DNA from: Hemiscyllium ocellatum
Taxonomy: Eukaryota
Length of the DNA: 64,000 bases
Reading direction: 5' to 3'
Assembly: GCF_020745735.1 (NCBI RefSeq)
Contig: NW_026867509.1
Coordinates: 868,001 to 932,000, forward strand
Below, piece after piece: positions 4,431-54,624 of the stretch (position 1 is the stretch's first letter; the number at the start of each line of letters is the position of its first letter). The translations under genes were made by a program, and so were the position numbers. Under the pieces are notes generated by a model that saw only the letters and a program-made list of their open reading frames with translations, did no database searches and was not told the origin of the DNA.

Positions 4431-4522
4431 TTTTTCAGAGATCACTATGAAAATGAGCAAAACTGGTCGAAGCTAAAATTGTTTTCGTCAACAGTTGGGA
4501 CATGATTGAGTGATTTCCGGAT
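4431..4522 (-). promoter_or_regulatory. V1 proximal promoter block with ETS site
   Basis: TTGAGTGATTTCCGGAT (4506-4522; ATCCGGAAAT = ETS consensus on the minus strand) and GCTAAAATTGTTTTCGTCAAC are conserved at the same distance from the ATG in V2. Confidence 0.55.
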
Positions 4523-5439: not shown

Positions 5440-6070
5440 GCGGAACCTGAACAAAAGCACTATTTCAATGCATCTTCATCATTTGTCCGTCTTGGTAGCA
5501 GATATCGTTCGTGTTCGAGATATTATTGGCAGACGGTTGTTGAGTAACCACTGTGAATCTTGCGAATGGTGCATACTGCTGTCCATAGCATGTCACGACG
5601 AAAGTTGCAGGAGGAAGATGGGATGCCTGTGAATGAGAATGCTTTGCAATTGATGTCATCGAGCATCTTAAGTGGTTTTGAAAGCCACTCACTTATCATT
5701 GCAGATGCAATATTTATATCGTTAAGTAAGTTCAGTTTCAGAACTATGGTAATGCCTGAGGTTGTTGACTGTCGGAGATTCAACTATGGTAATGCCACTG
5801 AACCTCTAGATGCAACATTTAGAATACTTGCTGTTGCAAATGGTCACTGCATGGAACTTGGCTGATGCGAATGTTACCTTCACTTATCAGTAGAAATTTG
5901 GGTGTCGTCCTGATCTTCCATGTCATCATGAAGGTGAACTGCTTCAATATCTAGGGAGTGGCAAATGATTCCGAACCGTGTGAAATTATCATCAAATATA
6001 CCAACTTCTGACATTATGATGGAGGGAAGGCAATTGATTAAGCAGGTGAAGATTGTTGGATGGCACAATA
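5440..6070 (-). mobile_element. Decayed CR1-type LINE fragment (paralogue at ~42.83-43.05 kb)
   Basis: Minus-strand translation resembles the CR1 RT 3' region (QSTTSGITIVLK); 5745-5910 aligns by eye with 42835-43005. Confidence 0.6.
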
Positions 6071-6559
6071 TGGCTGCTTCCCTTTTTATTTTTCACTGCA
6101 GAAGCTGGAGTAGTGCACGCTGCACTATGTCTGATTGCATTCTGTCTGAGTGGAATGTTCCACAGAATACTGAATGTTATGAAATACTGTCGAAAGTTTA
6201 AAGGAAGGATACAGAGTGGAAAGATTTTTTTTATCAAAGAGATTGGTTATGAGAAGCATCCTTATTCCGGCAGAGTGGAAAGAGTCGTCAAGGGAGGGAC
6301 TTCCAGGGATTAGATCCTCGACAGCTCCTAGGTTGAAGTGACAGCTATGACCTGCTTCAGGGATGCACAGGAGGACAGAATTGGAGGTATGTTGTGATAG
6401 TAGGTGGTTTTAGAATTTCAAATTGATGCAACTTGAAACATTGTTCTACTTACAAATATGAAAGTGAAATCTATCAAAGTGAGGCATTGCCAGGCGGGAA
6501 GCCAATGTAGGATATTGTGCCTGGGACAAGGGATGAACTGGATACTGCACATTTACCTG

Positions 6560-6860
6560 GAACACAAATTCGAATCCACCCTTGTCTGTGTGGAGTTTAC
6601 ACATTTTCCCTGCGTCTGCATAGGCATTTGCTGCGTGGTCAGAATTCCTCCCACAGTCCAAAAATATACAGGTTAGATGGGTTGACCATGCTAGATGGAA
6701 TCATGTTAAGCAGGGGATATGCAGATTAGGTGAATTAACTGTGATAAATACGGGCCTACCAGGACACGGTGGGCGTGGATCGGATGCTCTTTGGAGGTTC
6801 GTTAGATACTTAATGCGCCTATCAGCCTCATCCCACACAGTAGGGATTCTATACTTCTAT
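6560..6860 (+). mobile_element. Decayed HE1-type SINE (paralogue ~43.9-44.2 kb)
   Basis: GTCTGTGTGGAGTTT...TTCCTCCCACAGTCCAAA...GGTTAGATGGGTTGACCATGCTA matches the intact SINE at 25702. Confidence 0.75.
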
Positions 6861-7039
6861 CATGTTTGGAAGAACAAGCAGATATGAGCAGAGAGCAGAA
6901 ATTGCATTTACAAATGACTTATCCAAGAGTGACTCTATGTATTTTAAAATAGTCATTGCCAGAAAGTGACTAAGGATGTTTTAAGATGATATCAATAACA
7001 GTCTAGATGAGACAAAAGCTGTCATTTGAAATTAGAGCA

Positions 7040-7770
7040 GTATCATCTCGCCCTTTTGACCTCTTCCATCCAGCTTGATGGCAATCATAATGCTATCCCG
7101 AGGTCACTCGCGATGAATTACCTGCGATCTAATATCGATAGTTATCGCTGATTTCCTTGTTATTGTCACTGGATGCATTCTGAATAGGATCTGCTGCATT
7201 GACTATAGATACACTATCCTGTCTAATACACTCGTGAGTGTGTGTTTAGCTCAGTGGTGGTTTACATCAGCCGAAATGGATCAATCTGGCTGGCAGTAAC
7301 CTTCAAGATTCGTTGATTTGTGGTCATCTCCTGCCAGAGTCTGAGCAGCAAAAACTGCACCGAGAAAACTGCTTTGCGCCTCATGGGAGGGGTCTCCTCC
7401 TTGTTCTGCATCAAGAACTCCCCATTTTACGTTGTCTCACATCCCTTGCTTATACTGGAAGTGATGCCTTCTCTCTATGTCATCAAGACAATCTTCTACA
7501 CCTCGCTTACTTGGCAGATCTACCGATACCATGATCATATATATCTTAACTCCCGCTCATTATCGTTCTACTGCTCAACGCCCTTACCGTTACCATCATC
7601 ATAGAGGCCAACAGGGCAGACAAAAGGTTCCGAAGCTCTCAGCATAGTGAAGACCACGAGATGATCAAGCACAATTGTTCCATTGTTCTTCTGTTCCCAA
7701 TGCCTCACAGCTTTGTATTCCTGTAGATCTCTTACGTCAGATGATTCCCCTACATTTAGGTTCGAAGACA
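7040..7770 (+). pseudogene. GPR139-like GPCR pseudogene (lineage A, exon 2 remnant, truncated in TM6 by a Penelope arm)
   Basis: Nucleotide similarity to the intact copy, e.g. GATTTCCTTGTTATTGTCACTGGATGCATTCTGAATAGGATC, ATGGATCAATCTGGCTGGCAGT, CTGCACCGAGAAAACTGC; multiple frameshifts and stops. Confidence 0.85.
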
Positions 7771-7794
7771 GGACTGCCTTGGTAGTCTGGATTT

Positions 7795-8640
7795 GGGATG
7801 ACTGCCGGCATATTCAGTTCTTTTCGAACAAAATAGAACGTGTCTTCAACTACAGATCTGCAAATATAAATTCACACCATATACATACAAGCGTGTGTTC
7901 GTGCATGTGTATGAGATCTATCTCATACACATAGGGGACGGGGAGAGAAGGGGAGAGTGTGTGATTACCTGTGAGAGCGTCTGCGTGCGTGCTTGATAGT
8001 GTGTGGGCAAGTTTGATGGAGTGTTTGCCTGTGAGATGATGCACGTTTGAATGTGCATGTGTAGATGCATGTGTTTGTGTGTGTCTGAGAGACAGCATGT
8101 GCCTGAGAGAGAACATGTTCATAAGAGAGGGTCTGTGTGAGTGTGCGAGTGTGTGTATAAGGGCGTACAGTGTAGTGGCGTCCCTTGGAGTACGACATGA
8201 ACCCAACATGCCGGTTCAGGTCGTTCTCATTGATACTGAATTCAGTGATCAGCCTCTGCTGGACTATTCTGTGTTGTTACACATCCACAGTCTGTCTTGG
8301 AGGATGGTCACCCGAAGATCCAAAAAGAATATACTGCACGGGTGAAGTATTCTCCGACTGAGAGGGAGCATCCCTGTTTGTCGATTGCTGCACAGTGTTC
8401 ATTTATTGGTTGTCTTAGCATCCACGTGGCCTCGCCATTATACTATCATGAGGGCAACCTAGCCTGCAACATACGAGAGCGACGGTATTGGCCGAATCAC
8501 ATGAGTAACTGCCGCGTATTTGAAGGGTGGTGGCCAACGTTTAATTGTACTAACCATGTCGACGCTCTGACACGTCTTGCAATGGTGTGCTTTGGTGCTG
8601 TGTTCAATGTCATCCTGGAGGCTGGGCATTTTGTTGCGAT
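7795..8640 (-). mobile_element. Penelope-like element 3' fragment (GIY-YIG C-terminus plus CA-rich UTR), left arm of a head-to-head pair
   Basis: Minus strand HHCKTCQSVDM...; its reverse complement aligns with 8670-9480 across the coding remnant, CA-rich tract and TTATATTTGCAGAT...TTCTATTTTGTTC tail. Confidence 0.75.
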
Positions 8641-8644
8641 CAAT

Positions 8645-9293
8645 GGTTTGTTTATACAAATCTGTGATGATAACCACTGCAACATGTGTCAGAATGTCAC
8701 AATGGATGCTATCGTCACAAGTGGGGACACCACCCACCTGGTGAGCGGCAGATATTCATGCGACTCAGCCAAAATTTTCAACCTCAAATGTCCCTGTGGC
8801 ATCATATATTGGTGAGACCACGCGGGCGCTAAGACAATTGGTGAATGGAACCACACAGCCATTTCCAGATAGGGAGCTCCCTTCCAGGCGTGGAACACTT
8901 CAGGGTCAAGGAAGATCTGCCTCGGATCTTCAGGTGGCCATGCCTCATGGAGGAGTTTGGGACACGGAAAAATGCAGAGTTCTCAAGAAGAGGCTGATAG
9001 CCAATTTCGGTATTAATGAGGACATCCTCGAAAGGGATCGTGGTTCATGTCACACCACAGGGTACTCCCCTATATTGTACACCCTGAAGCAGACACTCAC
9101 ATAAGCAAATCAGTATATACATACATTCAGACACAGGATCACACTCGAACAATCACACAGATTCTCCCTCACACACACGCTCTCTGAATTACACTTGCAC
9201 ACACATTCACACTCAAACACATGTGCGCATTTTCTCACAGGCATATACTCTGTCACCAACACGCACACACTGCATCCAGAGCGCACACGCATA

Positions 9294-9336
<43 letters not shown>

Positions 9337-9895
9337 TCTCCCTCTCCCACGCACACACGTTTTCTGTCTCTGTCTCCCTCACACCCATGCACACGCACAT
9401 GTAAGTCTGTGGATTGAAATTATATTTGCAGATTTGTCTTTGCAAGTTTATTCTATTTTGTTCAAAATATACACAATCTGTAGGCAATCAGTTCATGTAG
9501 TATTTGGAAGTTGCTACTCTGGAAATCAATATAGTCGGACTTAAGGTTGGGATACAGACAGACACTAACCGCACACATTTAATGTCTAAGCAGAGGTGTC
9601 ACTTTTTTCTAATAAAACCTTAATTTATATCGGGACTGTGACGTGAAAGCAGTTCTGGGATATACATATCAATATTCGAAACCTGTATCCTTATTGTTAG
9701 TGATTAAAGACTTAACAGCAATCTGATATTGTTCAATCCATTGCATCAGTCGTTTGACCTTTTGACCTTTTATTATAAATGCTGTGTTCTATGATTCTGC
9801 CACACTAGCTGACGAAGGAGCAGCTCACCAAAAGCTTGTCCTTCCGGATAAACTTTTTGGATTGCAACCTGCTGTTGTGCGATTTTTTTGACATT
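8645..9895 (+). mobile_element. Penelope-like element 3' fragment (GIY-YIG, CA-rich UTR, terminal repeat with decayed hammerhead), right arm
   Basis: NHCNMCQNV...YSCDSAKIFNLKCPCGI plus YIGETTRALRQ (GIY-YIG endonuclease); (CA)n at ~9294-9334; CTGACGAAGGAGCAGCTCACCAAAAGCTT at ~9809-9837. Confidence 0.8.
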
Positions 9896-11068
9896 ACGAT
9901 ATAATTGTTCTGACTGGACTCGACTGAAAAGCCTACCTGAGGCTTACATGAATTAAGCTACCACTTAGTTTAATGATATTAATGAGTTTCCAAAAACTAT
10001 GATTCACACAATTATTATTTGATTGTCATGCTCTGCATCACTAATTGTTAAGACTTACAACTATTAACAGTCGGCCATTCTTAAAATAATTCATTCCTTT
10101 CTACTGTTTGATTACTCCTCATTACTTCATCACAGCATCTTAACATCAATCTCGTCAGATCTTATCAGTCTGGCATGTTGTCAAAACTTTCAAATGTCCG
10201 AAAATACATTGCACACACTGGTTGTCCCTTATTAGTGCTAAAAATAGCATCCACAAAACGAATTCCAATGGGTTTGCCAAACATTCATTCCGTTTTATAA
10301 CTTCATATTGAGTCATCTCAATCATATAATATTTCAAAATGTCTACTTATCGTTTCCTTCATTATATGACGTGGTTTTTTTCTTATAACCAACATTCAAC
10401 ATGTCTTTGGTTCCTGTTTTCTTATCCCACTCTTCTTAAATAGTTGGGTTGTTTTCCCTACTTTCTAAACCTGAGGAACCATTCCAGAATTTCTCGAATT
10501 TCCAAGGATCACCATCAGTGCAATCACTTTTTTCTCCCCACATCATTCAAGACTCTGGAATGGACTCCATTTGGTCGAGAGATTTATCAATCTTTATTAA
10601 AAGAAGTTTTCTGTTCTCATTTGCTAAAAGGTTTTCATGCGCTGGTATCAGATACCATGCTTCTCAAATGTCATCCATCATTGGTAAACCGAATTTCAAA
10701 CTGTTGAGCTTTAAATATAGACAAATGTTAAGACAGAATAACAGTAGAATGCAAATCTTTAACTGATTTCACAACTAAAGAGACGAAACAATTGGGAAAA
10801 TCGCAGAGAAGGGCTGAGAGTTCCTTCAAATTAAGCAAACGACATAAGCTCATGTTTTGAAATCGGGAATCCATTTGATGGAGAAGTTATACACTTGGAA
10901 GGGGGCTTTAAATTTGCAGGTTGCTATTCTCAGTTTACGTGTATGCAATTGTACAGCATTCCAATGTTACATAGAAAGCATGAAATAGTGAGTAATTAGG
11001 TTTGTTCGCCAGACTGAAACGAAGGTACGTGTTGAAACTTAATTAACACTCTCGAGATCCTCAAGTAT

Positions 11069-11074
11069 TATAAA
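11069..11074 (+). promoter_or_regulatory. Candidate TATA box of the intact GPCR
   Basis: TATAAA 78 nt upstream of ATG 11147; the paralogue has TATAAA at 57224, 79 nt upstream of its ATG. Confidence 0.5.
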
Positions 11075-11146
11075 TTAGAGACCTGTTGTTTGTGTCACAG
11101 AGCTCATGTGAGACGTTTTGTGATTTCCATTAGTTCATAACAAGTG

Positions 11147-12593
11147 ATGCATGGCCCAGCGAGTGTCCCTTTCTATGCCATTTACTATCCAGCTCTTGCT
11201 GCTATTGGTGTCCCTGGTAAGTTACAGATTCTAAATATATGTTTGTTAGTTGCAAGAAAATCTTTTGTATTAAATCACAGGAATGACTTTTTTTTCTGAT
11301 CTTCACTACTGAAGGAATTGAGCGCAGGTCCCTATACATGCGTCAAACATTGAGCTTTCCTCAACTGCATCCTCTGTAGTACACAGCAACATTCTACCCA
11401 AAATGTAATATTGAAGAATTATGGAGCAATTGGTTATTACATCATTGAGTTCGGAATTGTAATATGTAACATTGCCTGAATATTAATCAGAATAACTGCA
11501 CAAAATTAAATTCAGTTGTAATGCTGGAAATTACTGATGTATGGAATAATACGCTATCGTTGCGTTCGATATTCTCATGCACAGATTACATGATAATCCC
11601 GAAAAAAGTCATTGCAGGTAGGTCATTATTTTAAAGATTATAGGTATATCTCGTGATTAATCAGGTCCGTTCAATAATACTTCGCAATTTCCCCCAGCCA
11701 ACCTGCTGGCGATCGTCATACTATTGCGAGGACGGTGTGGACTCTCTGGGTGCACCACCTATTACTTGGTGGGGATAGCAGTGAGTGATTTTCTTGTGAT
11801 CATCACTGGGTGCATCCTGAATCGGATCGGTGGCATTTATTTCCGACACAGCACACTGCCCACGACCACTGCCTGCGCAGTCAGCACCGTGATGATCTAT
11901 ACCAGCCGAGATGGCTCAGTCTGGCTGACCGTGGCATTCACCATCGACCGTTTCGTGGCCATATGCTGCCAGAGTTTGAAGACCCGGTACTGCACTGAGA
12001 AAACTGCATCACTGTTCATTGGAGTGGTTTGTGTCCTGAGCTGTATCAAAAACCTGCCTTCATACTTCGTCTACCAGCCCTTGTACATTGTGGACGGGAG
12101 GTCCTGGTTCTGTGGCTTCAGAGACACGTATTATAACTCACCTGCATGGAAATCCTATGACTGGCTGAATCACATCTTGACGCCTATTCTCCCGTTCCTT
12201 CTTATTCTACTGCTCAATGCCATGACTGTCAGATACATCTTGATGGCCAGCAGTGCCCGAAGGAGGCTTCGGGGCTTGGCGAGCCACGAAGACACAGAAA
12301 TGGCCAACCGCAAGAGGTCCATCATACTGCTCTTCACTATCTCGCTCAGTTTCCTCCTTCTATGGGTCACCTATGTCGGGCGCTTCCTCTATGTGCGGTT
12401 TACAGGTGAGGCATATTTCAGCAGCTTAGATTTCACTGACCCACAATTTATTCTCCAAGAAACGACGAACATGCTGCAAATATTAAGTTCCTGCAACAAC
12501 GTCTTCATTTATGCAATATCCCAGAAAAAATTCCGAGATGAACTGAAGAAGATGATGTTCTCACCCTTCACATCTCTCGCTGTGTGCAAATGA
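11147..12593 (+). CDS. GPR139-like: Intact GPR139/GPR142-like class A orphan GPCR, 321 aa: join(11147..11216, 11698..12593)
   Basis: Exon 1 MHGPASVPFYAIYYPALAAIGVP-G then GTAAGT; acceptor TTTCCCCCAG; exon 2 open to TGA. Seven hydrophobic segments with GVPANLL (TM1), AVSDFL (TM2), TIDRFVAIC (DRY variant), WFC (ECL2), NMLQILSSCNNVFIY (TM7). These motifs match GPR139 as I recall it (GLPANIL, LTIDRYIAVC, ANMLALLNTAINFFLY). A family call, not orthology. Confidence 0.92.
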
Positions 12594-12750
12594 TTTTTTC
12601 ACGTGTTCCATGGATCAGAGTGACTCAGTGCATAAAATATTCTCTCCTACTGAAAAATAAGTAAAGTTTGTGTGTTTCGTGCTTCACTACCGGAGATATG
12701 ACCAGTTCCTTTTCCAGCCTTTACATTGCCTGTTATTAAGACAAACAGAA

Positions 12751-12756
12751 AATAAA
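12751..12756 (+). terminator. Candidate polyadenylation signal of the intact GPCR
   Basis: AATAAA ~160 nt after the stop codon; an AATAAA is present at the equivalent place (~58922) in the paralogue. Confidence 0.45.
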
Positions 12757-14672
12757 AAGCAGCCGAAGTAGTGTTTTTATGGATGTGAGGCGAAATTGTC
12801 TTCTTTGCCTCTGATGACTGCATTATAGTTCTAGTGGTCTCGGCTAAGTCATTTAATATTCATCTATTTTGCTGCTTCCCTCCTTCCCTCTCAGTTGCCA
12901 TTCTATTCTTCCTTCCTCCTTCTCCATCATTCGTGTTTCAGGATTATTGCATCTATTTATTTGAATCGCACACGTTGCCTTTTACTTTGACATAGACCCG
13001 ATGAACAGCTCATTACACCCTAAAAAATGTTCTCGACAGTTTTCATGTTCTCACTGCATCATACAATCCATGCCTCTCCTGTTAAATCTCAGATTTACTT
13101 TTTGCAGCTCCAGAGATCTCGGCGTCTCCATCCCGTCCCAGCCTCTACACAGCAAACCTTGACATGCAGACATATATCCTGGACCTAAAGTCAAACGTAA
13201 CTCTCGTTCCTTTAACCACAAGAAATTCAAGGTTATTTTCATGATTTCCTAACATTGCGTTTTGATCAATATTCTAAAAAGCAAACAGAAACGATGCTTT
13301 GCTTGTACTACAGACAATTAACACATCTGCCAGGTCCTGATTGTTATTCCTCTCCTTTCCCTGTGTGAATATTGTGAATGGACTAAGGACACAATCTGGT
13401 GGTGGTTTTGGAAAATTAAGTCTAAATGTTTAATCAAATAAATTTAATGTTTCTGCTTTTTTTTTGCAATGAAACCGATATTATCATGAGGACAAACAAT
13501 TGCTCCTCAATTTCAACGATTGAGGACATCTACATTGTTATTTATCTGTTTTTAATCAGACTAATAATTTAATTTTTTTTAAAAATGTGTGTCATACATT
13601 CTTCGGAAGTGAACGTCTCCACCAAAGTTTCTTGCGTATTATTCATGCTGTAATAGGGCTAGGATTTCTAGAAGTTTCAATATTCATGCAAATGAAAATG
13701 AAATGCAACAGGTGAATTGAACACGTTCCTTTAATTTACCATGTTCTGATCGTTGAGAGCACGGGTAAGTGGAGCTGAGTCCACAAAACAAATCAACAAT
13801 TAGCTTATTATAAGGCGGAGCAGGCTTAAAGCGTCGAAGCCCCTATTCCTGCTCTTAATTCTAGTGTTCCTATCACAGTCAACTGGAACACGCAGTTTTC
13901 TGATGAAGAGTCACCGGCCTCAAAATTCTTACTCTGCTTTCTCCCAACAGCTGCTGCCAGATCTCCTGAGTTGCGCCAGCAACTTGAGTTTAGTTTCAGA
14001 TCTTCAGCATGCACAGCACGTTATTTTATTGTTATGGTACAGACAATAATATGAAATACCAATTAACGATTGTTCTGATATAATGTTTGAAAGTTCTATC
14101 CAGGAAGTGGACTTTGACAAAACACTTTTTTGTTTGCATATCTCGATGAGTTGGCAATTTACACGACTTTAATCTTTCCTGTGGTGTATCTATATGCTGC
14201 ACAGTACAGTTTTTTCAACACTTAACACCGACAGGTCGGCGTTATTCTGGACCTGCAAATCGACAACGTGACATTTTGGAACTGTTATCATGAAGATGCA
14301 ATGGCAGTACACAACAACCCACAATGTGGAGGTTGTTTCAGTGTCTCATTATTAGAATTTTGTGACAGGTCATTGTATCTCAAACAGGATACTACAGTTC
14401 CCTGTTTTGCCTGAAGATTTTGCTGGATCAAAACGAGTCCCTGAATTTTCTATCGCACGTCATTCCTAAAACAATAAAACGTTTTGGAACACCATGAAGG
14501 ATGCAAAATAAATTAGTTGTTTTCTGTTCTCGAAATTGACGGCATTCCTTTCAATAATAGATTTATACCAATTAAAGTGTTGTGTCCGAATGATAAGTAT
14601 CAGCTATCACCTTGAACTCCGGAACCACATTAGATCCACTCCTGATCTCAATGTTTGCCTAGACGCTCCGAG

Positions 14673-14711
14673 AGTTTTTGTACACGGTCAGCCAAGTTCT
14701 GAGTCTCTGTG
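14673..14711 (-). other. Recombination signal sequence (23-RSS) of V2
   Basis: CACAGAG (14711-14705), 23-nt spacer ACTCAGAACTTGGCTGACCGTGT, ACAAAAACT (14681-14673), after YYCALS. Heptamer and nonamer are identical to those of V1. Confidence 0.97.
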
Positions 14712-15519
14712 GGACTCAGTGCGCAGTAATACACTGCAGTGTCTGTGAGTACTGTTTTCAAAACCTTCAGCTGCATAGTGCGGTTCACATGGTCAAAGTC
14801 CCAGGAGAGCTTGTCTGGTAGAAAACTCGTTTTCTGGCTATATTGGTTAATCTGCAGCAGAACATTCATGGACCCGTTGGAAGGTTAACGGTACCAGAAC
14901 AGAGCAGGATTGCTGTTTATTGTAGAGTACTGACAGAACAACAGGGCATCATCACCCTCGTTTACTGTGATTTCAGGCGGAGTTTGTGCGACAGAATCGC
15001 CATGACAAAGTCCTGTAAGAGCCAAGAATTAAAGAAATTTAATGAGGTACTTCAACATTCTTATCTCATATACTCAGCCAGTTTACCTTCATCAACAACC
15101 CGAGAAAGAAAAAAATCAGGGAATTTGGACTGGGATCAATTTCATATTAGGAGATCATTCCCCATTTCATCTCCCACAACGTGAAAGGAAAACTGAAATA
15201 TATTGGTGAATATAAAACACTCCGTTCTGTCGAATTATCTCAATGGCCTCGGTCCTGCCTGAATTTGCCGTCTAACTATTCCACTGCCATTCACTCACGT
15301 AAATTTGCTAATTTCTCTCGAAATCTGCTCATTGTTGGGGAAAGCTTAGATCTGAATAGTTTTATTTAGGAGAATGTATTCTTACTTCTGCATCACTCAA
15401 ATTGATCGAGTAAACGTAAGTCCCAGCAAAGAGCTGACACACATAAGTAGACAAGCTTTCAACGTACCAGTGAGAAGACCTATAGTTCAGAGGAGTAAAC
15501 AAAGAGCTCCAGGTAACAT
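14712..15519 (-). pseudogene. TCR alpha/delta-type V pseudogene V2: complement(15468..15519, 14712..15012)
   Basis: Leader MLPGALCLLL*TIGLLT-G (TGA at 15489-15487), donor GTACGT, acceptor TCTTACAG. V exon LCHGDSVAQTPPEITVNEGDDALLFCQYSTINSNPALFWYR*PSNGS...DTAVYYCALS (TAA at 14887-14885). No frameshifts. Confidence 0.93.
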
Positions 15520-15616
15520 GTTTGCAGAGAATTTGCGATGAATGTGAGCAGAACTGGCTGACGCTAAAATGGGTTTCATCAAGAGTAGGGTAATTGAGGT
15601 TGAGTAATTTCCGGAT
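15520..15616 (-). promoter_or_regulatory. V2 proximal promoter block with ETS site
   Basis: TTGAGTAATTTCCGGAT at 15600-15616 is homologous to V1 4506-4522. Confidence 0.55.
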
Positions 15617-15732
15617 CTCTCCTCGTTGGATCATTGTTGCTCAAGGCATCACATGATAGCCAATGAGCTACAGGCTCCCTTATTACTCAATTCCGCCATT
15701 CAGCTTCAAGCTCTTTTGAGCTCCACTTCATA

Positions 15733-18700
15733 TTATAGAACATAGAACATAGAAAGATACAGCGCAGTACAGGCCCTTCGGCCCTCGATGTTGCGCCGAC
15801 CGAATCCTACCTAACCTACACGAGCCCAATAACTTCCAAATGCCTATCCAATGCCCGCTTAAATGACCATAAAGAAGGAGAGTTCACCACTGCTACTGGC
15901 AGGGCATTCCATGAACTCACAACCCGCTGTGTAAAGAATCTACCCCTAACATCTGTCCTATACCTACCACCCCTTAATTTAAAGCTGTGTCCCCTAGTAA
16001 CACCTGACTCCATTAGCGGTAAAAGGTTCTCAGTGTCGACCCTATCTAAACCCCTAATCATCTTATACACCTCTATCAAATCTCCCCTAAACCTTCTCTT
16101 CTCCAATGAGAACAGCCCCAAGTGCCTCAGCCTTTCCTCATAAGATTTTCCTACCATTCCAGGCAACATCCTGGTAAACCTCCTCTGCACTCGTTCCAAT
16201 GCCTCCACATCCTTCCTATAGTATGGCGACCAAAACTGCACACAATACTCCAGATGAGGCCGCACCAGAGTCTTATACAGTTGCAACATGACCTCAGGAC
16301 TCCGGAACTCAATTCCTCTACCAATAAAGCCCAGTACACCATATGCCTTCCTCACAGCACTATTTACCTGGGTGGCAACTTTCAGAGATCTGTGTACATG
16401 GACACCAAGATCCCTCTGCTCATCCACACTACCAAATAGCCTACCATTAGCCCAGTAATCCATCTTCTTGTTACTCCTACCAAAGTGAATGACTTCACAC
16501 TTAGCTACATTGAATTCCATTTGCCACATTTCTGCCCAGCTCTGCAACTTATCTATATCCCGCTGTAACCTACCACTTCCTTCCTCACTATCCACAACTC
16601 CACCGACTTTTGTGTCATCCGCAAACTTGCTTACCCAGCTTTCAAGCCCTTCCTCTAGATCATTTATAAAGATAACAAAAAGCAATGGTCCCAAAACAGA
16701 TCCTTGTGGTACACCGCTAGTAACTGCACTCCAAGATGAACATAGTCCATCAACTACTACCCTCTGTCTCCTTCCAGCCAGCCAATTCCTAATCCAAACC
16801 TCTAATGTATCCTCAATGCCATACCTCCGTAGTTTTAGCATTAGCCTACCATGGGGAACCTCATCGAACGCCTTACTAAAATCCATATACACAACATCTA
16901 CTGCTTTACCCTCGTCCACTTCCTTAGTCACCTTCTCAAAGAACTCAATAAGGTTTGTGAGGCACGACCTGCCCTTCACAAAACCATGCTGGCTATCCTT
17001 GATCACGTTATTCCTATCCAGATGTTCATAAATCTTATCCCTTACCATTCTCTCTAAGACTTTGCCCACCACTGAAGTCAGACTCACTGGCCTATACTTA
17101 CTAGGGCTATCCCTACTCCCTTTCTTGAACAAGGGGACCACATTCGCTATCCTCCAGTCCTCTGGTACTATTCCCGTTGACAATGACGATATAAAAATCC
17201 AGGTCAATGGCTCTGCTATCTCCTCCCTAGCTTCCCATAGGATCCTAAGGTAAATGCCATCAGGCCCAGGAGACTTATCTATTTTCATCCTCTCCAATAT
17301 TCCCAGAACCTCTTCCCTGCATATTTCCAGGCCATCCATTCTAATCATTTGTGACTCCATATTCACATCAGCAACAGTGTCCTGTTCCTGAGTGAATACT
17401 GATGAAAAGTATTGATTTAGTGTCTCTCCAATCTCCTCCGCCTCCACACACAACTTCCCACTACTATCCTTGACTGGACCGATACCTACCCTAGTCATCC
17501 TTTTATTCCTGACATACCTATAGAAAGCCTTTGGGTTTTCCCTAATCCTACCAGCTAAAGACTTTTCATGTCCCCTTCTCGCTTCTCTTAGCTCTCTCTT
17601 TACATCCTTCCTGGCTACCTTATAACTCTCTATCGCCCCAACCGAACCTTCACGCCTCATCTTTACATATGCCGCCTTCTTCCTTTCGCAAGGGATTCCA
17701 ATTCCTTACTAAACCACGGCTGCCTCACAAGGCCCTTTACACCATGCCTGACTGGTACATATTTATCGAGGACACGTAGTAGCTGCTCCTTGAACAATCC
17801 CCACATCTCATTAGTGTTCTTCTCTTGAAGCCTGTTTTTCCAGTCCACACATCCTAAGTCATGCCTCACTGCCTCATAATGTCCCTGCCCCCAGCTATAA
17901 CTCTTGCCCTGCGGCGCACACTTATCCCTCTCCATCACTAAAGTAAAAGTCACCGAGTTGTGGTCACTGTCACTGAAGTGCTCACCTACCTCCAAGTCTA
18001 ACACCTGGCCTGGTTCATTACCTAGAACCAAGTCCAGTATAGCCTCACCTCTTGTTGGCCTGTCTACATATTGTGTCAGGAAACCCTCCTGCACACATTG
18101 GACAAACACCGACCCATCTAATGAACTCGAGCTATAGCTCTCCCAGTCAATATCTGGGAAGTTAAAGTCCCCATAACAACCACCCGACTACCTTCACTCT
18201 TTTCCTGAATCATCCTCGCAATATTATCCTCTACTTCTCTAGGACTATTAGGAGGCCTGTAGAAAACACCTAACAGGGTGACCTCACCTTTCCTATTTCT
18301 AACCTCAGCCCAAACTACCTCAGATTGCAAGTCCTCTTCCATCGTCCATTCCACTGCTGTAATACTATCTTTGACAAGTAATGCCACACCTCCCCCTTTT
18401 TTACCCCCATGTCTGATCCTACTAAAACATTTAAACCCTGGAACCTGCAACAGCCATTCTTGTCCCTGTTCTACCCACGTCTCTGTAATGGCCACAACAT
18501 CGAAGTCCCAGGTACTAACCCACGCTGCAAGTTCACCTACCTTATTTCTTATACTTCTGGCATTGAAGTATACACACTTCAATCCACCCTTCTGTTTACA
18601 GGCACCCTCCTTTGAGATCGCTGCATTATTCATAACCTCCCTACACTCAAGGTCCTGTACCCTAAAGCTACAGTCCAGGTTCCCATGCCCCGGCGGAGTT

Positions 18701-19583
18701 AGTTTAAACCCTCCCAAAGAGCACTAGCAAACCTCCCCCCAAGGATACTGGTGCCCCTCAGGTTCAGGTGTAGACCATCCTTTTTATAGAGGTCCCACCT
18801 TCCCCAGAAAGAACCCCAGTTGTCCAGAAACCGGAATCCCTCCCTCCTGCACCATCCCTGTAGCCACGCATTTAACTGCTGTCTCTCCCTATTCCTCGAC
18901 TCTCTATCACGTGGCACGGGTAACAAACCAGAGACTACAACTCTGTTTGTTCTAACTCTGAGCTTCCAACCTAGCTCCCTGAAAGCCTGTCTGACATCCT
19001 CACCCCTCTTCCTACCTATATCGTTGGTGCCAACGTGGACCACGATCTGGGGCTGATCCCCCTCCCCCTTAAGGACCCGGAAAACACGATCAGCGACATC
19101 ACGTAACCTTGCACCTGGGAGGCAACATACCAAACGTAAGTCACTTTCGCCCCCACAAAACCGTCTGTCTGTACCTCTCACTATCGAGTCCCCAAGAACT
19201 ATCGCTCTACCTTTCACCACCCTTCCCTTCTGAGCAACGGGGCCAGGCTCCGTGCCAGAGGCCTGAACCTCGTTGCTTGCCCCTGGTAAGTCATCCCCCC
19301 CACAAGTATCCAAAACGGTATACTTGTTCTTGAGGGGAATGACCGCAGGGGGTCCCTGCACTGGCTTCCTCCTCCCACTCCCCCTCACTGTCACCCATCT
19401 ATCTTGAACTTTCGGAGTAACTACTTCCCTAAAGCTCTGATCTATGACCCTCTCTGCCTCCCGAATGATCCGCAGTTCAACCAAATCCAGCTCCAGTTCC
19501 CTAACACGGGCTTGGAGGAGCTGGAGATGGGTGCACTTCTTGCAAGTGTACTCAGCAGGGACGCTAATGGCTTCCCTTCCCTC
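15733..19583 (-). mobile_element. Young 5'-truncated CR1 LINE, left arm of the palindrome (ORF1 esterase remnant open; ORF2 with two 1-bp deletions)
   Basis: ORF1 EGREAISVPAEYTCKKC...GDSIVRG...VHVGTND...DGLHLN (SGNH esterase). ORF2 has EN (VYFNARSIRNK) and RT (QGSVLGPLLF, SKFADDTK), with frameshifts at ~18149 and ~17682; (TAGAACA)n tail at 15735-15755. Confidence 0.98.
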
Positions 19584-22500
19584 GCCATTAGCGTCCCTGC
19601 TGAGTACACTTGCAAGAAGTGCACCCATCTCCAGCTCCTCCAAGCCCGTGTTAGGGAACTGGAGCTGGATTTGGATGAACTGCGGATCATTCGGGAGGCA
19701 GAGAGGGTCATAGATCAGAGCTTTAGGGAAGTAGTTACTCCGAAAGTTCAAGATAGATGGGTGACAGTGAGGGGGAGTGGGAGGAGGAAGCCAGTGCAGG
19801 GACCCCCTGCGGTCATTCCCCTCAAGAACAAGTATACCGTTTTGGATACTTGTGGGGGGGATGACTAACCAGGGGCAAGCAACGAGGTTCAGGCCTCTGG
19901 CACGGAGCCTGGCCCCGTTGCTCAGAGGGAAGGGTGGTGAAAGGTAGAGCGATAGTTCTTGGGGACTCGATAGTGAGGGGTACAGACAGACGGTTTTGTG
20001 GGGGCGAAAGTGACTCACGTTTGGTATGTTGCCTCCCAGGTGCAAGGTTACGTGATGTCGCTGATCGTGTTTTCCGGGTCCTTAAGGGGGAGGGGGATCA
20101 GCCCCAGATCGTGGTCCACGTTGGCACCAACGATATAGGTAGGAAGAGGGGTGAGGATGTCAGACAGGCTTTCAGGGAGCTAGGTTGGAAGCTCAGAGTT
20201 AGAACAAACAGAGTTGTAGTCTCTGGTTTGTTACCCGTGCCACGTGATAGAGAGTCGAGGAATAGGGAGAGACAGCAGTTAAATGCGTGGCTACAGGGAT
20301 GGTGCAGGAGGGAGGGATTCCGGTTTCTGGACAACTGGGGTTCTTTCTGGGGAAGGTGGGACCTCTATAAAAAGGATGGTCTACACCTGAACCTGAGGGG
20401 CACCAGTATCCTTGGGGGGAGGTTTGCTAGTGCTCTTTGGGAGGGTTTAAACTAACTCCGCCGGGGCATGGGAACCTGGACTGTAGCTTTAGGGTACAGG
20501 ACCTTGAGTGTAGGGAGGTTATGAATAATGCAGCGATCTCAAAGGAGGGTGCCTGTAAACAGAAGGGTGGATTGACGTGTGTATACTTCAATGCCAGAAG
20601 TATAAGAAATAAGGTAGGTGAACTTGCAGCGTGGGTTGGTACCTGGGACTTCGATGTTGTGGCCATTACAGAGACGTGGGTAGAACAGGGACAAGAATGG
20701 CTGTTGCAGGTTCCAGGGTTTAAATGTTTTAGTAGGATCAGACATGGGGGTAAAAAAGGGGGAGGTGTGGCATTACTTGTCAAAGATAGTATTACAGCAG
20801 TGGAATGGACGATGGAAGAGGACTTGCCATCTGAGGTAGTTTGGGCTGAGGTTAGAAATAGGAAAGGTGAGGTCACCCTGTTAGGTGTTTTCTACAGGTC
20901 TCCTAATAGTCCTAGAGAAGTAGAGGATAATATTGCGAGGATGATTCAGAAAAAGAGTGAAGGTAGTCGGGTGGTTGTTATGGGGGACTTTAACTTCCCA
21001 GATATTGACTGGGAGAGCTATAGCTCGAGTTCATTAGATGGGTCGGTGTTTGTCCAATGTGTGCAGGAGGGTGTCCTGACACAATATGTAGACAGGCCAA
21101 CAAGAGGTGAGGCTATACTGGACTTGGTTCTAGGTAATGAACCAGGCCAGGTGTTAGACTTGGAGGTAGGTGAGCACTTCGGTGACAGTGACCACAACTC
21201 GGTGACTTTTACTTTAGTGATGGAGAGGGATAAGTGTGCGCCGCAGGGCAAGAGTTATAGCTGGGGGTAGGGAAATTATGAGGCAGTGAGGCATGACTTA
21301 GGATGTGTGGACTGGAAAAACAGGCTTCAAGAGAAGAACACTAATGAGATGTGGGGATTGTTCAAGGAGCAGCTACTACGCGTCCTCGATAAATATGTAC
21401 CAGTCAGGCATGGTGTAAAGGGCCTTGTGAGGCAGCCGTGGTTTAGTAAGGAATTGGAATCCCTTGCGAAAGGGAAGAAGGCGGCATATGTAAAGATGAG
21501 GCGTGAAGGTTCGGTTGGGGCGATAGAGAGTTATAAGGTAGCCAGGAAGGATGTAATGAGAGAGCTAAGAGAAGCGAGAAGGGGACATGAAAAGTCTTTA
21601 GCTGGTAGGATTAGGGAAAACCCAAAGGCTTTCTATAGGTATGTCAGGAATAAAAGGATGACTGGGGTCGGTATCGGTCCAGTCAAGGATAGTAGTGGGA
21701 AGTTGTGTGTGGAGGCGGAGGAGATTGGAGAGACACTAAATCAATACTTTTCATCAGTATTCACTCAGGAACAGGACACTGTTGCTGATGTGAATATGGA
21801 GTCACAAATGATTAGAATGGATGGCCTGGAAATATGCAGGGAAGAGGTTCTGGGAATATTGGAGAGGATGAAAATAGATAAGTCTCCTGGGCCTGATGGC
21901 ATTTTCCTTAGGATCCTATGGGAAGCTAGGGAGGAGATAGCAGAGCCATTGACCTGGATTTTTATATTGTCATTGTCAACGGGATTAGTACCAGAGGACT
22001 GGAGGATAGCGAATGTGGTCCCCTTGTTCAAGAAAGGGAGTAGGGATAGCCCTAGTAAGTATAGGTCAGTGAGTCTGACTTCAGAGGTGGGCAAAGTCTT
22101 AGAGAGAATGGTAAGGGATAAGATTTATGAACATCTGGATAGGAATAACGTGATCAAGGATAGCCAGCATGGTTTTGTGAAGGGCAGGTCGTGCCTCACA
22201 AACCTTATTGAGTTCTTTGAGAAGGTGACTAAGGAAGTGGACGAGGGTAAAGCAGTAGATGTTGTGTATATGGATTTTAGTAAGGCGTTCGATAAGGTTC
22301 CCCATGGTAGGCTAATGCTAAAACTACGGAGGTATGGCATTGAGGATACATTAGAGGTTTGGATTAGGAATTGGCTGGCTGGAAGGAGACAGAGGGTAGT
22401 AGTTGATGGACTATGTTCATCTTGGAGTGCAGTTACTAGCGGTGTACCACAAGGATCTGTTTTGGGACCATTGCTTTTTGTTATCTTTATAAATGATCTA

Positions 22501-23423
22501 GAGGAAGGGCTTGAAAGCTGGGTAAGCAAGTTTGCGGATGACACAAAAGTCGGTGGAGTTGTGGATAGTGAGGAAGGAAGTGGTAGGTTACAGCTGGATA
22601 TAGATAAGTTGCAGAGCTGGGCAGAAATGTGGCAAATGGAATTCAATGTAGCTAAGTGTGAAGTCATTCACTTTGGTAGGAGTAACAAGAAGATGGATTA
22701 CTGGGCTAATGGTAGGCTATTAGGTAGTGTGGATGAGCAGAGGGATCTTGGTGTCCATGTACACAGATCTCTGAAAGTTGCCACCCAGGTAAATAGTGCT
22801 GTGAGGAAGGCATATGGTGTACTGGGCTTTATTGGTAGAGGAATTGAGTTCCGGAGTCCTGAGGTCATGTTGCAACTGTATAAGACTCTGGTGCGGCCTC
22901 ATCTGGAGTATTGTGTGCAGTTTTGGTCGCCATACTATAGGAAGGATGTGGAGGCATTGGAACGAGTGCAGAGGAGGTTTACCAGGATGTTGCCTGGAAT
23001 GGTAGGAAAATCTTATGAGGAAAGGCTGAGGCACTTGGGGCTGTTCTCATTGGAGAAGAGAAGGTTTAGGGGAGATTTGATAGAGGTGTATAAGAAGATT
23101 AGGGGTTTAGATAGGGTCGACACTGAGAACCTTTTACTGCTAATGGAGTCAGGTGTTACGAGGGGACACAGCTTTAAATTAAGGGGTGGTAGGAACTTGA
23201 CAGATGTTAGGGGTAGATTCTTTACACAGCGGGTTGTGAGTTCATGGAATGCCCTGCCAGTAGCAGTGGTGAACTCTCCTTCTTTATGGTCATTTAAGCG
23301 GGCATTGGATAGGCATTTGGAAGTTATTGGGCTAGTGTAGATTAGCTAGGATTCGGTCGGCGCAACATCGAGGGCCGAAGGGCCTGTACTGCGCTGTAGC
23401 TTTCTATGTTCTATGTTCTATAA
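19584..23423 (+). mobile_element. Young 5'-truncated CR1 LINE, right arm of the palindrome (ORF1 with stop and frameshift; ORF2 with a single TAG)
   Basis: Mirror image of the left arm. ORF1 has TAA at 19866-19868 and a -1 deletion at ~19926; ORF2 20437-23340 is interrupted only by TAG at 21268-21270; tail (TTCTATG)n ends at 23423. Confidence 0.98.
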
Positions 23424-24172
23424 AAGGTAGGTGAGTTCTGAAACTACCATTTTGTGCTGGTATTTACGATAGAGAAGGAACTAGTGGAGTCTGAATTTAC
23501 AATTCAAGTTACTATTAAAAAGGAAGACATGTTGTGTGCCTTAAAAATATCATTAAGTTAGATAGGTCCTCAGGTTCTCATCGGATCTAAGCCAGAAACT
23601 TGAGGGAGGCAAATAAGCAAATTGTTGAAGCATTGACAGACATTTTTATATCATGTTGGCTATAGGTGAAGTCCCAGAGTAGTGCAGAACGTTTAATGTT
23701 GTCCCGTTGTTTAAGAAGAGTAGCAGGGATAATCCAGGAAATTACAGGCCTGTGAACCTCAGGTCAGTGGCACGGACATTATTGGAAAACATTCTCAGGG
23801 AGAAGATCTGTACGTATTCAGAGGCAATTGGACTTGTTAGTGATGCACAGCACGGTTTTGTGCAGGGACGATTTAGCCCCACTAACTTGTTTGAGTTATT
23901 TGAGGAGGAAATTAAGATGACTGATGAAAGAAATGTGTTGATGTTGTCGACAGGGACGTAAGTAAAATATTTCACTCACACGCTCATGACAGACTGGTGT
24001 CAAACGTTGAAGTCACACGGCATCAGAATGAGCTGGAAGATGGTCACAGAACTGGCTTAGTAATAGGAGACAGATGGTAGTAGTGGAAGGCTGTTTTTCT
24101 GAATGGAGGTTTGTGACTAGTGATGCTCCACATGGATCATTGCAGGGACCTTTGCTGATCGTGGTCTACATA

Positions 24173-26177
24173 TATAGAACATAGAACATTACAGCGCATA
24201 CAGGCCCTTCGGCCCTGGATGTTGCGCCGCCCTGTCATACTAATCTGAAGCCCATCCCAACTACACTATTCCATGTACGTCCACTTGCCTGGCCAATGAT
24301 GATTTAAATGCACTTAAACCTGGCGAATCTATTACCGATGCAGGCAAAGCATCCCATACCCTTACTACTCTTTGCGTAAAGAAACTACCTCTGACAATTG
24401 TCTTATACCTATCTTCCCTTACTTTAAAGTTGTGTCCCCTCGTTTTTGCTGTCCCCATACGTGGAAAAAGGCTCTCCCTCTCCACCCTATCTAATCTTTG
24501 ATTATCTTGTGTGTTTCTATTAAGTCACCTCTCAACCTTCTTCTCTCTAACGAGGACAGCCTCAAGGCCCTCAGCCTTTCCTCGTAAGACATTCCTTCCA
24601 TGCCAGGCAACATCCTAGTAAATCTCCTCTGTACCCTTTCCAAAACTTCCACATCCTTCTTATAATGCGGTGACCAGAACTGTACACAATACTCCAAGTG
24701 TGGCCGTACCAGAGCTTTGTAGAGCTGCAGCATAACCTCCTGGTTCCGGAACTCAGTCCCTCTATTAATAAAGGCTAAAACATTGTATGCCTTCTTAACA
24801 ACCCTGTCAATCTGGGTGGCAACTTTCAGGGATCTGTGTATATGGATACCGTGATCTCTTTGCTCATCTGCACTCCCAAGAATCTTACCATTAGCCCAGT
24901 ACTTTGCATTCTGATTACTCCAGCCCAAGTGTATCACCTCACATCTGTCCACATTAAACTCCATTTGCCAACTCTCAGCCCATCTCTGCATCCTATGTAT
25001 GTTTCTCTGCAACCTACTACATCCTTTGTCATTATCCACAACTCCACCGACCTTAGTGTCGTCCGCAAATGTACTATCCCACCCTTCTAAGCCCTCATCC
25101 AGGTCATTTATAAAAATGACGAGCAGCATTGGACCCAACACCGATCCTTGCGGTACTCCGCTAGTAACTGGACACTAAGATGAACAAGTTTCATCAACTA
25201 CACACTCTGTTTTCTTTCAGCAAGCCAATTACAGATCCAAACTGCTATGTCACCCACAATCTCATTACTCCGCACTGTGTATAAGAGCCTCCTGTGGGGA
25301 AGCTTGTCGAATGCCTTGCTGAAATCCATATGCAACACATCAACCGGTTTACACTCATTTATCTGTTTGGTCACTTTGTCAAAAAACTCAATAACATTCG
25401 TTAGGCACGACCTACCCTTCACAAAACCGTGCTGACTGTCCCTGAACCGATTATTCTTTCTGGATGGTTGTCAATCCTGTCTCTTATAAACTTTTTCACC
25501 ACTTTACCAACAACTGAAGTGAGACTCACTCGTCTTTAATTACCAGGGCGGTCTCTACCACCTTTTTTGAACAAGGGAACCACATTTTCTATCCACCAAT
25601 CCTCAGGCACTATTCCTGTAGAAAATGATGATTTGAAGATCAATGCCAAAGACTCGGCAATCTCTTTCCTTGCATCCCAGAGGATCCTATAATCGATCCT
25701 AGGCGGCACGGTGGCACAGTGGTTAGCACTGCTGTCTCACAGCGCCTGAGACCCGGATTCAATTGCCGACTCAGGCGACTGACTGTGTGGAGTTTGCACG
25801 TTCTCCCCGTGTCTGCGTGGGTTTCCTCCGGGTGCTCCGGTTTCCTCCCACAGTCCAAAGATGTGCGGGTCAGGTGAATTGGCCATGCTAAAATGCCCGT
25901 AGTGTTAGGTAAGGGGTAAATGCAGGGGTATGGGTGTGTAGCGCTTCGGCGGGTCGGTGTGGACTTGTTGGGCCAAAGGGCCTGTTTCCACACTGTAAGT
26001 AAACTAATCTAATCTAATCATCCCAACCAGCCCAGGGGACTTGTCTATTTTCACACTCTGCATTATTTCTAATAACTCTTCCTTGTGAACCTCAATCTCT
26101 TCTACTCTAGATGTAAGTATCTCTGTATCTTCCTCATCAACATTTTCATTTTCTATAGTGAAAATGTTTGCGAGGAA
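24173..26177 (-). mobile_element. CR1 LINE 3' half (RT), minus strand, itself interrupted by a SINE
   Basis: ORFs 25198-25422, 24491-25141 (LGPMLLVIFINDL...TFADDTKVGG) and 24261-24485; AGAACATAGAAC tail at ~24176. Confidence 0.92.
25702..26018 (+). mobile_element. Full-length HE1-type (V-SINE core) tRNA-derived shark SINE
   Basis: tRNA-like head GGCGGCACGGTGGCACAGTGGTTAGCACTGCTG with A and B boxes, core TGTGTGGAGTTTGCACGTTCTCCCCGTGTCTGCGTGGGTTTCCTCCGGGTGCTCCGGTTTCCTCCCACAGTCC, CR1-like tail ending (TAATC)n. Confidence 0.93.
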
Positions 26178-27564
26178 GATGATTTGAAGGAAAACGTAGC
26201 TGTTCTAATAAATAATTCAGAGGAGCTTACAAAGATTGATAGAGTTGCGAATTGTAAAGAGGGCAGTGCGAGAATATATCAGAATATAGGTCAGTTGGAG
26301 GCATGGGCAGGAAAAAGGCAGATGGAATTTCATCTAGACAGATGTGAGGCGATGCATTTTGGTAAGTCAAATACTGCTGAAAATTATGAAGTGAATGCCA
26401 GAACATGTTGAAATTTTGATATGCAGAGCGATCTGGGTGTGCACATCCACAGATCCCTGAAGGTGGCAGTGCAGATAAATAAGGTAGCAAAGTAAAGGCC
26501 TATGACATGCTTGCCTTCATTTGAATGGACAAGAATATAAGGTCTGAAAGTTGTGCTGCAGCATTATGAACTTCAATTAGGCCACACTTGAAATATTGAT
26601 ACGGTTCTGTTCATCATACTACCAGAAGGAAGTCGGCGAAGTGGGGAAATGTTTTACAATAGTGTTGCCTGGTTAGGAACCAGTTCAACTGTCAGGAAAG
26701 GGTGGATGTACTAGGATCATTTTCAATGGAACGCAGGAGGTTGAGGGGCGACCTGGTAGACTTTTTAATGTTGCAAATGGCATGATAGAGTGGAAAGTAT
26801 GAGGACTTCTCCCAGGATGGAGGGGTTAATTAGTAGGGGACAAAGGTTCAACGTGCGAGGGGGAGGGTTTAAGAGAGCTGTGCGAGGCAAGTGTTTCGCA
26901 CAAAGGGTGATGAGTGCCTGGAATATGCTGCTGCCCGAGCAGACGGTGGAAGCAGACAGTAGCAGAATTCAAGAAACACCTGAATGAATACATGAATAAG
27001 AAGGCAATAAAGGAACACATTCCTTTCCTTCACTCTTAATTTTTTCCATCATTCTGAATCGTCTTTTTTTTTGCAATTATCCAGCTCCTATCTGCATACT
27101 GCGAATCAAATCAATGATACCGATTCTCGGTTTTTGGCTTCCAGTGGATCTGACCATTATCAAAACAATGACAATTTCCTCCCCTGAAGTATGTTAGTGA
27201 CTCAGATGTTGTTTTTTCTGGCAAGTGGCAATGGGTTCATAGACATCATTAGAGTATTAATTCCAGATTTAATTATTCTTTTTCCCTCAAACGAATTGAA
27301 CATAGCACGAAACAAGGCTCTGGCCATTTGTATTTGCTACAATGAATTTTGATCACAGTCTTTCTGGCCAGTGCCAGTAGTACTACACTTGAAGTACGAA
27401 AACGCAAAAAAAATTTTGAAAATGTTCTAATTAAAAATAGCTACCTCGGGCAGAGACAGGTTGCACTCATTGGCAAAGTGTGGCCATAATTCCATGCTCA
27501 ATTTGACTATATTCCCAATATTCAGATATTTGTGCAAACTACAAATAGCCCAAACATCAGCTTA

Positions 27565-45335: not shown

Positions 45336-45539
45336 GTTGCCTTAAATTGCAAAAAAGCGCAACAGAAAATCCCCACATAAGTTTTCCTACATCATTGTGT
45401 CTCAGAATGTTATGCTGCATTACAATGCTGAAACAAATGTTGTGTATTTAAGCTCCTGAACTAGTGAAATGTAAAACTCTCTCTGCTACCAATAATTATA
45501 AAATACAGAAAAATTGGAGGTTCTGCATTTCTGGGTGGC

Positions 45540-51640: not shown

Positions 51641-51709
51641 CACAAATTAGATATCATTCATATCTTATAACAAACTGTTATATGTCTTGGGGTACACAAT
51701 GAATCAATC

Positions 51710-54607: not shown

Positions 54608-54624
54608 GTCTCATTAAAATTTCT

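Follow-up and report, generated by a model that had tools for sequence, protein, structure and literature searches.

In a stretch of 64,000 nucleotides (nt) of the Hemiscyllium ocellatum genome (contig NW_026867509.1, positions 868,001 to 932,000 of the forward strand, in the following called the window, whose own numbering is used throughout), a CR1 element, i.e. a long interspersed nuclear element (LINE), is present as a head-to-head duplicate forming a 7.7-kb palindrome next to V2, a T-cell receptor (TCR) alpha/delta-type variable (V) segment. The duplicate is confined exactly to the LINE and is confirmed as a genuine feature. Its most probable origin, to which we give somewhat better than even chances, is a single target-primed CR1 complementary DNA (cDNA) that snapped back, copied itself and was bridged to a second break within an older CR1, with loss of target DNA.

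Structure and divergence of the palindrome

In an inverted-repeat scan of the region from 14.0 to 25.5 kb four collinear segments combine into one palindrome, whose limits were set by aligning the left side globally with the reverse-complemented right side. The arms thus delimited measure 3839 nt (15733-19571) and 3840 nt (19584-23423) and enclose a centre of 12 nt, TTCCCTTCCCTC, at 19572-19583 with the symmetry point at 19577.5. They are 98.985% identical over 3841 columns (blastn) and differ at 39 positions, namely by 36 substitutions and 3 single-base indels. At 15732 and 23424 the similarity is lost abruptly, with 9 of the next 15 mirrored bases in agreement and noise thereafter, and the 3′ tail terminates at the same final base in both arms (...CTATGTTCTATGTTCTATAA). 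An edge search revealed no target-site duplication (TSD) of at least 5 nt at the borders of the palindrome. The GC skew changes its sign at the centre, and a single hairpin is predicted for the central 300 nt (loop of 12 nt, -198 kcal/mol, z = -39.6). A centre-spanning 20-mer gave 0 matches in metagenome contigs. The original prediction of two ~3.84-kb arms mirrored around 19577.5, both ending at one common base of the 3′ tail and lacking a TSD, is thereby reproduced by scan, alignment and edge search alike; its wording of a near-perfect palindrome holds for the mirror structure and is too strong for the arms, which are ~99% identical, not identical.

In alignment with full-length proteins encoded by the first open reading frame (ORF1) of the element, residue 15 is the first one covered by the left arm and residue 19 the first covered by the right arm. 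Only ~14-18 ORF1 codons and the 5′ leader are missing from the arms, which represent ~95% of the full element. The native sequence around this point is provided by a related copy, L001 (~93% DNA identity), which reads ...ATG TTT GAG GTG AGG GAA GCT ATT AGC... and possesses a leader of at least 131 nt upstream of the ATG. Read on the - strand, the centre is GAG GGA AGG GAA (E G R E) and stands in frame with the left arm; 10 of its 12 positions match the native GAGGTGAGGGAA of L001 (GAG GTG AGG GAA, E V R E). In the opposite orientation it matches nothing, and it contains neither filler nor adapter DNA. Because of the match to L001 and the continued reading frame of the left arm, the 12-nt centre is native to the left arm only, in line with what had been proposed for the spacer. 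The base preceding the 12 nt is T in L001 at a position where microhomology would need C, and the turn would therefore have used 0-1 nt of microhomology. With L001 taken as the upstream sequence, no intrinsic inverted repeat that might guide a fold-back at the turn was found by eye (~3/12 complementary).

The ORF1 fragment is devoid of any Met. By its position the turn lies near the end of the template and is not a random 5′ truncation. The arms had originally been described as truncated; their stop points are indeed 12 nt apart, but a stop at ORF1 codon 15-19 that leaves ~95% of the full length does not agree with truncation at random. Two longer ORF1 matches (P0007 and P0035) were checked as potential centre-spanning ORFs of other palindromes, which they are not.

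In order to identify the repeated unit, its two ORFs and its 3′ end were considered. In both arms ORF2 comprises the Pfam domain Exo_endo_phos (6e-21) followed by RVT_1 (3e-33 and 3e-35), and ORF1 codes for an SGNH/GDSL esterase (Lipase_GDSL_2 at 7e-13) with 81 homologues of 305-315 aa, mostly from elasmobranchs (sharks and rays). Bird and turtle genomes are dominated by CR1, and the best ORF2 matches outside the sharks are found in birds and turtles with 40-57% identity (similarity only, no phylogenetic tree having been built). The stem-loop block of the 3′ untranslated region (UTR) and the (ATGTTCT)2-3 tail recur in five copies, including the related contig and the older copies in the window. 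Covariation in the stem-loop is weak, with one compensatory pair, and the 3′ UTR has no Rfam family match. The length of the tail varies in other CR1 copies, in contrast to the identical tails of the two palindrome arms. Canonical CR1s bear an esterase ORF1 (CR1/L2 type), and galeomorph sharks are without L2; elements of the CR1 group make up 22-34% of elasmobranch genomes (PMC13343379). Based on the esterase ORF1, the ORF2 with endonuclease and reverse transcriptase (RT), the 3′ stem-loop and microsatellite tail, the relatives of the RT and this survey, the unit is classified as a canonical CR1 LINE. Its RT portion is 94-95% identical at the amino-acid level, in either arm, to another Hemiscyllium ocellatum copy, P0137, which is less than the 99% DNA identity of the arms with each other. 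Three shark-type CR1 ORF1/ORF2 proteins that are 63-73% identical to the palindrome element are filed under bacterial names (P0005, P0086 and P0138; Pseudomonas aeruginosa, Carnobacterium maltaromaticum and Klebsiella pneumoniae) and almost certainly represent fish or shark DNA contaminating bacterial assemblies.

The 36 substitutions between the arms consist of 15 transitions and 21 transversions. Within the coding regions 27 are non-synonymous and 6 synonymous (82% non-synonymous as compared with 78% for random changes), with 3 more residing in the 3′ UTR. Each of the five ORF-breaking lesions is private to one arm: the right arm carries TAA at 19866-19868, a -1 frameshift near 19927 and TAG at 21268-21270, the left arm -1 frameshifts near 18169 and near 17682. 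Since all disabling lesions are arm-private and the differences look neutral, the arms were essentially identical and ORF-intact over the retained part when they were formed, and their differences reflect neutral decay after insertion and not the divergence of two functional source lineages. The divergence since formation is 0.94% and neutral; with an arm difference of 1% and private disabling mutations, the palindrome is judged to be old and neutrally decayed.

Five outgroups (L001, L002, L003 and two older copies in the window) were employed to polarise the substitutions, 22 of which are derived in the right arm and 9 in the left arm, with 5 unresolved. The excess of private changes in the right arm is suggestive only: its binomial p is 0.03 and rises to 0.09 when four clustered changes are taken as a single event. 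Where the arms differ, P0137 sides more often with the left one. The cluster is located at 23194-23198 (mirror positions 15958-15962) and comprises four substitutions in five bases, GGTATAGGA to GGAACTTGA. Because all four are derived in the right arm, it is a multi-nucleotide mutation. A<->T transversions account for 9/22 of the right-derived and 1/9 of the left-derived changes, both being small counts. A transversion-rich spectrum was considered as a sign of error and discarded as not diagnostic, the ratio between L001 and the arms being likewise near 1:1 by eye. The differences are spread roughly evenly, with 6, 12, 8 and 13 in successive kb from the centre and a longest gap of 560 nt, and no gene-conversion tracts were seen.

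Flanks and insertion site

On its left side the palindrome abuts the upstream region of V2. The final 10 nt before the junction, CCACTTCATA, are identical in the upstream regions of V2 and of its paralogue V1, and the V1 upstream region runs on for ~1.1 kb that have no counterpart anywhere to the right of the palindrome. The right flank aligns as ORF2 of an old CR1 from its very first base, near residue 423. A - strand CR1 at 24174-25706 interrupts this older + strand element (23424-24172, resuming at 26121-26960), whose 5′ part is entirely absent to the left of the palindrome. The upstream regions of V1 and V2 cease to be homologous precisely where the left arm begins, and an old ORF2 is already under way at the first base of the right flank. 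Both facts are most simply accounted for if the palindrome connects two distinct breakpoints, with loss of the DNA that lay between. A landing of the palindrome exactly on an older junction, as the alternative, needs a coincidence. Together with the right arm, the older CR1s at 23424-26960 form further imperfect inverted repeats, which are 73-77% identical.

The 15 nt adjoining the tails on the outside (15718-15732 and 23424-23438) are mirror-alike at 9 of 15 positions (GAGCTCCACTTCATA and GAACTCACCTACCTT), a resemblance that was noticed post hoc and that could be due to chance or to a shared nick-site preference. It is more readily put down to chance than to a copied flank or a nick-site motif, as the right flank is ORF2 of the old CR1 from the first base.

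Several earlier statements on the flanks are corroborated by these results. As claimed, the interior of an older CR1 forms the right flank; the target deletion, formerly only considered possible, is now judged likely from the end of the V1/V2 homology and the opening of the right flank in an old ORF2; and the distances given as ~210 bp to the V2 start codon and ~1 kb to a recombination signal sequence (RSS) were measured as 214 nt from the V2 ATG and 1022 nt from the V2 RSS heptamer to the arm. The left flank, previously called the V2 promoter, is the V2 upstream region, but the promoter aspect is weakened by the state of V2 itself, as described below.

Origin of the palindrome

The observed geometry, together with the native origin of the loop, ends shared by both arms, unrelated flanks and neutral divergence, suggests the following steps for a snap-back of the cDNA. 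The CR1 endonuclease would nick the + strand at ...CCACTTCATA^, which is 214 nt upstream of the V2 start codon, and the freed 3′-OH would prime reverse transcription from the microsatellite tail of the RNA, giving rise to the left arm, antisense on the + strand. First-strand synthesis would continue for ~3.85 kb to ORF1 codon 15, roughly 175-600 nt short of the RNA 5′ end, where the 3′ end of the cDNA would fold onto the nascent cDNA, aided by no more than 1 nt of microhomology and leaving a loop of 12 nt. Extension along the cDNA to its very first nucleotide would produce the right arm, and because the cDNA would be copied back to that nucleotide, both arms would share the last tail base as well as the number of tail repeats. 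The new 3′ end would then be joined to a second DNA end in the older CR1 with loss of the DNA between the breaks, and ordinary second-strand synthesis would unfold the hairpin to a duplex palindrome. A small asymmetric deletion in the centre, which is the usual way for long palindromes to gain stability, could later have reshaped the turn.

A loop native to the left arm is as predicted for fold-back of the strand made first, and arms that were near-identical and ORF-intact when made are as expected from one template. No extra assumptions are needed for the snap-back to yield arms of equal length with identical tails, a loop native to one of them, and copies that were nearly identical at birth. 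It furthermore predicts the right arm to be the secondary copy, and this is the arm with the nominal, only suggestive, excess of private changes.

Related arrangements are known from several systems. In twin priming, which leads to the 5′ inversion of L1 elements, the 5′ part is inverted without being duplicated, and a single poly(A) tail and usually a TSD are found. The palindrome would share with it an inverted segment originating from a single retrotransposition event, but twin priming is rejected as its source, since the whole 3.84 kb are present twice, with a tail at both outer ends; the distinction from twin priming that had been drawn beforehand is thus upheld. Penelope-like insertions typically contain an inverted 5′-truncated copy beside a copy of the same element. 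The element of the palindrome, with its APE endonuclease, RT and esterase ORF1, is a CR1 LINE and not Penelope-like, and for CR1 an inverted pair is exceptional.

Closer parallels are offered by insertions made by the R2 protein (PRINT) in human cells, in which cDNA snap-back 5′ junctions have been described, often following full-length cDNA synthesis (PMC11371274, PMC11331408). As proposed for the palindrome, the 3′ end of the target-primed cDNA there primes synthesis complementary to itself before the 5′ junction is formed, frequently after a near-complete cDNA, giving target junctions to antisense element sequence (PMC11371274; PMC11331408). Those cases are engineered, somatic, site-specific and known as junction reads, whereas the palindrome is natural, CR1-derived and germline-fixed; moreover, its copy-back would have run over all 3.84 kb as far as the first cDNA nucleotide, and the product bridges a probable deletion. 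At L1 integration sites self-annealed 3′ ends prime inverted duplications through a hairpin with ~2 nt of homology (10.1101/2024.12.14.628481). There the 3′ overhang of an end resulting from target-primed reverse transcription (TPRT) self-anneals into a small hairpin, and the insert can sit at the apex of the fold-back. Contrary to the palindrome, in which the element only is duplicated, these events copy flanking DNA or whole chromosome arms (10.1101/2024.12.14.628481).

Several points weigh against the snap-back. The sequence equally allows one cDNA or two cDNAs from one source RNA. With 0-1 nt of microhomology the priming would have to be a near-blunt template jump, and to copy a DNA template over 3.84 kb, right up to its first nucleotide, would take a processivity that is not known from CR1. 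The excess in the right arm is statistically weak and, if real, would imply an implausibly high copying error of ~3-4 per kb.

Among the competing explanations, two-ended priming is the main rival, although we regard it as unlikely. Here the ends upstream of V2 and in the old CR1 would each prime a CR1 cDNA, the 5′-side ends of the two cDNAs would be joined, either through a template jump or through end joining, and the DNA between would be lost, thus forming a bridge. Two complete outward-facing 3′ tails, the absence of a TSD and two unrelated mid-sequence breakpoints agree with it, and bridges of this type are known from human tumours, where two inverted 5′-truncated L1s, each with its own poly(A), are joined at their 5′ breakpoints (10.1101/2024.08.27.596794). 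Like the palindrome, these consist of a head-to-head pair with outer 3′ tails that links two DNA breaks; their pieces are, however, distinct synchronous events with truncations of their own, in contrast to palindrome arms that are equal within 12 nt and were near-identical at birth (10.1101/2024.08.27.596794). Two cDNAs would have to stop no more than 12 nt apart after ~3.84 kb, which needs an ad hoc common stop. If this were the 5′ end of the RNA at ORF1 codon 15, the RNA would be without the ORF1 start codon, and the fragment has no Met; in addition, the two tails have the same number of repeats and the same last base. The mirror likeness of 9/15 outside the tails might hint at a nick-site preference shared by two priming events, but it is post hoc and faces an old ORF2 that begins with the first base of the flank. 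The private nature of all arm variants, as far as tested, fits snap-back and bridge alike. The original prediction had named fold-back of one cDNA or two joined cDNAs, and both survive as candidates, the fold-back being ranked ahead of the joining, from which it is not decisively separated.

The palindrome might also have been born once elsewhere, through any of the mechanisms considered here, and have reached this locus as a secondary copy, by segmental duplication or by propagation of a palindromic unit. A G-protein-coupled receptor (GPCR) annotated in Hemiscyllium ocellatum (P0202) is 97% identical to a GPCR of the window, and a recent paralogous block of the window may accordingly exist. 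The V/GPCR cassettes within the window are old, being only 68-76% identical, and the window contains no recent duplicate of the flanks, which leaves a secondary copy rather improbable. Still less credence is given to an assembly artefact, either a chimeric read produced by fold-back or two loci wrongly joined, even though palindromes are a known failure mode of long-read libraries and the same window contains an assembly gap (59732-59869). A fold-back read would mirror the flank and yield identical arms, whereas here the flanks are unrelated and the arms show 39 differences and different disabling mutations. Both arms stop exactly at the 3′ end of the element, the centre is native ORF1 without adapter or filler, and a misjoin through a repeat overlap would have resulted in the same and not in inverted orientation.

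The lowest probability, a very small one, is assigned to an inverted duplication at the DNA level following an ordinary insertion (by repair of a break through fold-back, by a template switch during replication or by breakage-replication-fusion) or to two abutting independent insertions. Fold-back inverted duplications are common in genomes, yet a process acting on DNA has no reason to halt at the first tail base on both sides, and chromosomal fold-backs mirror their flanks, which are unmirrored here. Adjacent CR1 copies are to be expected frequently in view of the 22-34% share of the group in elasmobranch genomes (PMC13343379), but two insertions independent of each other would have to coincide in family, age and tail and be truncated 12 nt apart, and one of them would have to land exactly at the 5′ end of the other copy.

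Genomic setting and implications

The coordinates of the palindrome, its flanks and the neighbouring V segment are compiled in the table.

Features of the palindrome and its immediate surroundings (positions in the window)
Feature	Position	Strand	Description
V2, TCR alpha/delta-type	14673..15519	-	Leader ATG 15519-15517; V exon ~15014-14712; 23-RSS
Left target flank	15451..15732		V2 upstream region, homologous to V1 upstream (4362-4633) up to the junction
Left arm	15733..19571	-	CR1 copy from 3′ tail (15733) to ORF1 codon ~19; ORF1 part intact; ORF2 with two private -1 frameshifts
Centre	19572..19583	-	GAGGGAAGGGAA (E G R E); native left-arm ORF1 continuation, codons ~15-18; putative fold-back loop
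Right arm	19584..23423	+	Same CR1, from ORF1 codon ~19 to 3′ tail; ORF2 20437-23340 in one frame apart from private lesions
Right-arm 3′ UTR	23341..23423	+	Conserved stem-loop block, then (ATGTTCT)n tail ending ...TCTATAA; mirror image at 15733-15815 on -
Right target flank	23424..24172	+	Older CR1 interior, ORF2 residues ~423-685

The 23-RSS of V2 is composed of the heptamer CACAGAG (14711-14705) and the nonamer ACAAAAACT (14681-14673). Two in-frame stops are present: the leader has TGA at 15489-15487 (ACA in V1), and the glutamine of the WYRQ motif is replaced by TAA at 14887-14885. V2 is thus a pseudogene with a normal-looking 23-RSS. In V1 (3546-4440, - strand), a much older paralogue, leader and V exon are open and an RSS of its own is found.

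The wider window contains an old cassette duplication, 9277-13357 versus 55450-59552, with 76% identity over 4.2 kb and including a GPR139-like GPCR. The GPCR copy at 11724-12593 is open; the one near 58199-58708 is a 169-codon ORF only and probably a pseudogene. The assembly gap mentioned above (138 N) is situated in this paralogous cassette, just past the second GPCR block. The region upstream of V1 at 5728-9271 is paralogous to 42820-55461, and ~27 kb of insertions therefore lie between V2 and the rest of the V2 cassette.

The palindrome is a known kind of integration accident, of which it provides an unusually complete and old natural case in CR1. Snap-back is known from engineered R2 and from somatic L1, and the palindrome would extend this accident to CR1 as a third LINE clade, in a germline and completed over nearly the full length of the element. 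Long palindromes with short spacers are generally held to be unstable, and the persistence of 7.7 kb with a 12-nt spacer through ~1% of neutral divergence is notable for this reason. The neighbouring V segment, itself a pseudogene and equipped with an intact-looking RSS, makes the locus a convenient one for studying palindrome stability in lymphocytes. The earlier suggestion that the palindrome might extrude a cruciform or hairpin near an RSS, in cells expressing Artemis:DNA-PK, is speculation. Given the abundance of CR1, such integration events could contribute significantly to the long inverted repeats, deletions and fragile sites of elasmobranch genomes. There is also a minor chance, which we consider doubtful, that the palindrome is not a one-off, either because the CR1 family has a preferred turn at ORF1 codons 15-19 (e.g. 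the 5′ end of a truncated template RNA) or because the dimer has propagated as a unit. A preferred turn-around or a propagating dimer would, if true, constitute a reproducible, sequence-determined route by which a LINE gives rise to long palindromes in a vertebrate germline.

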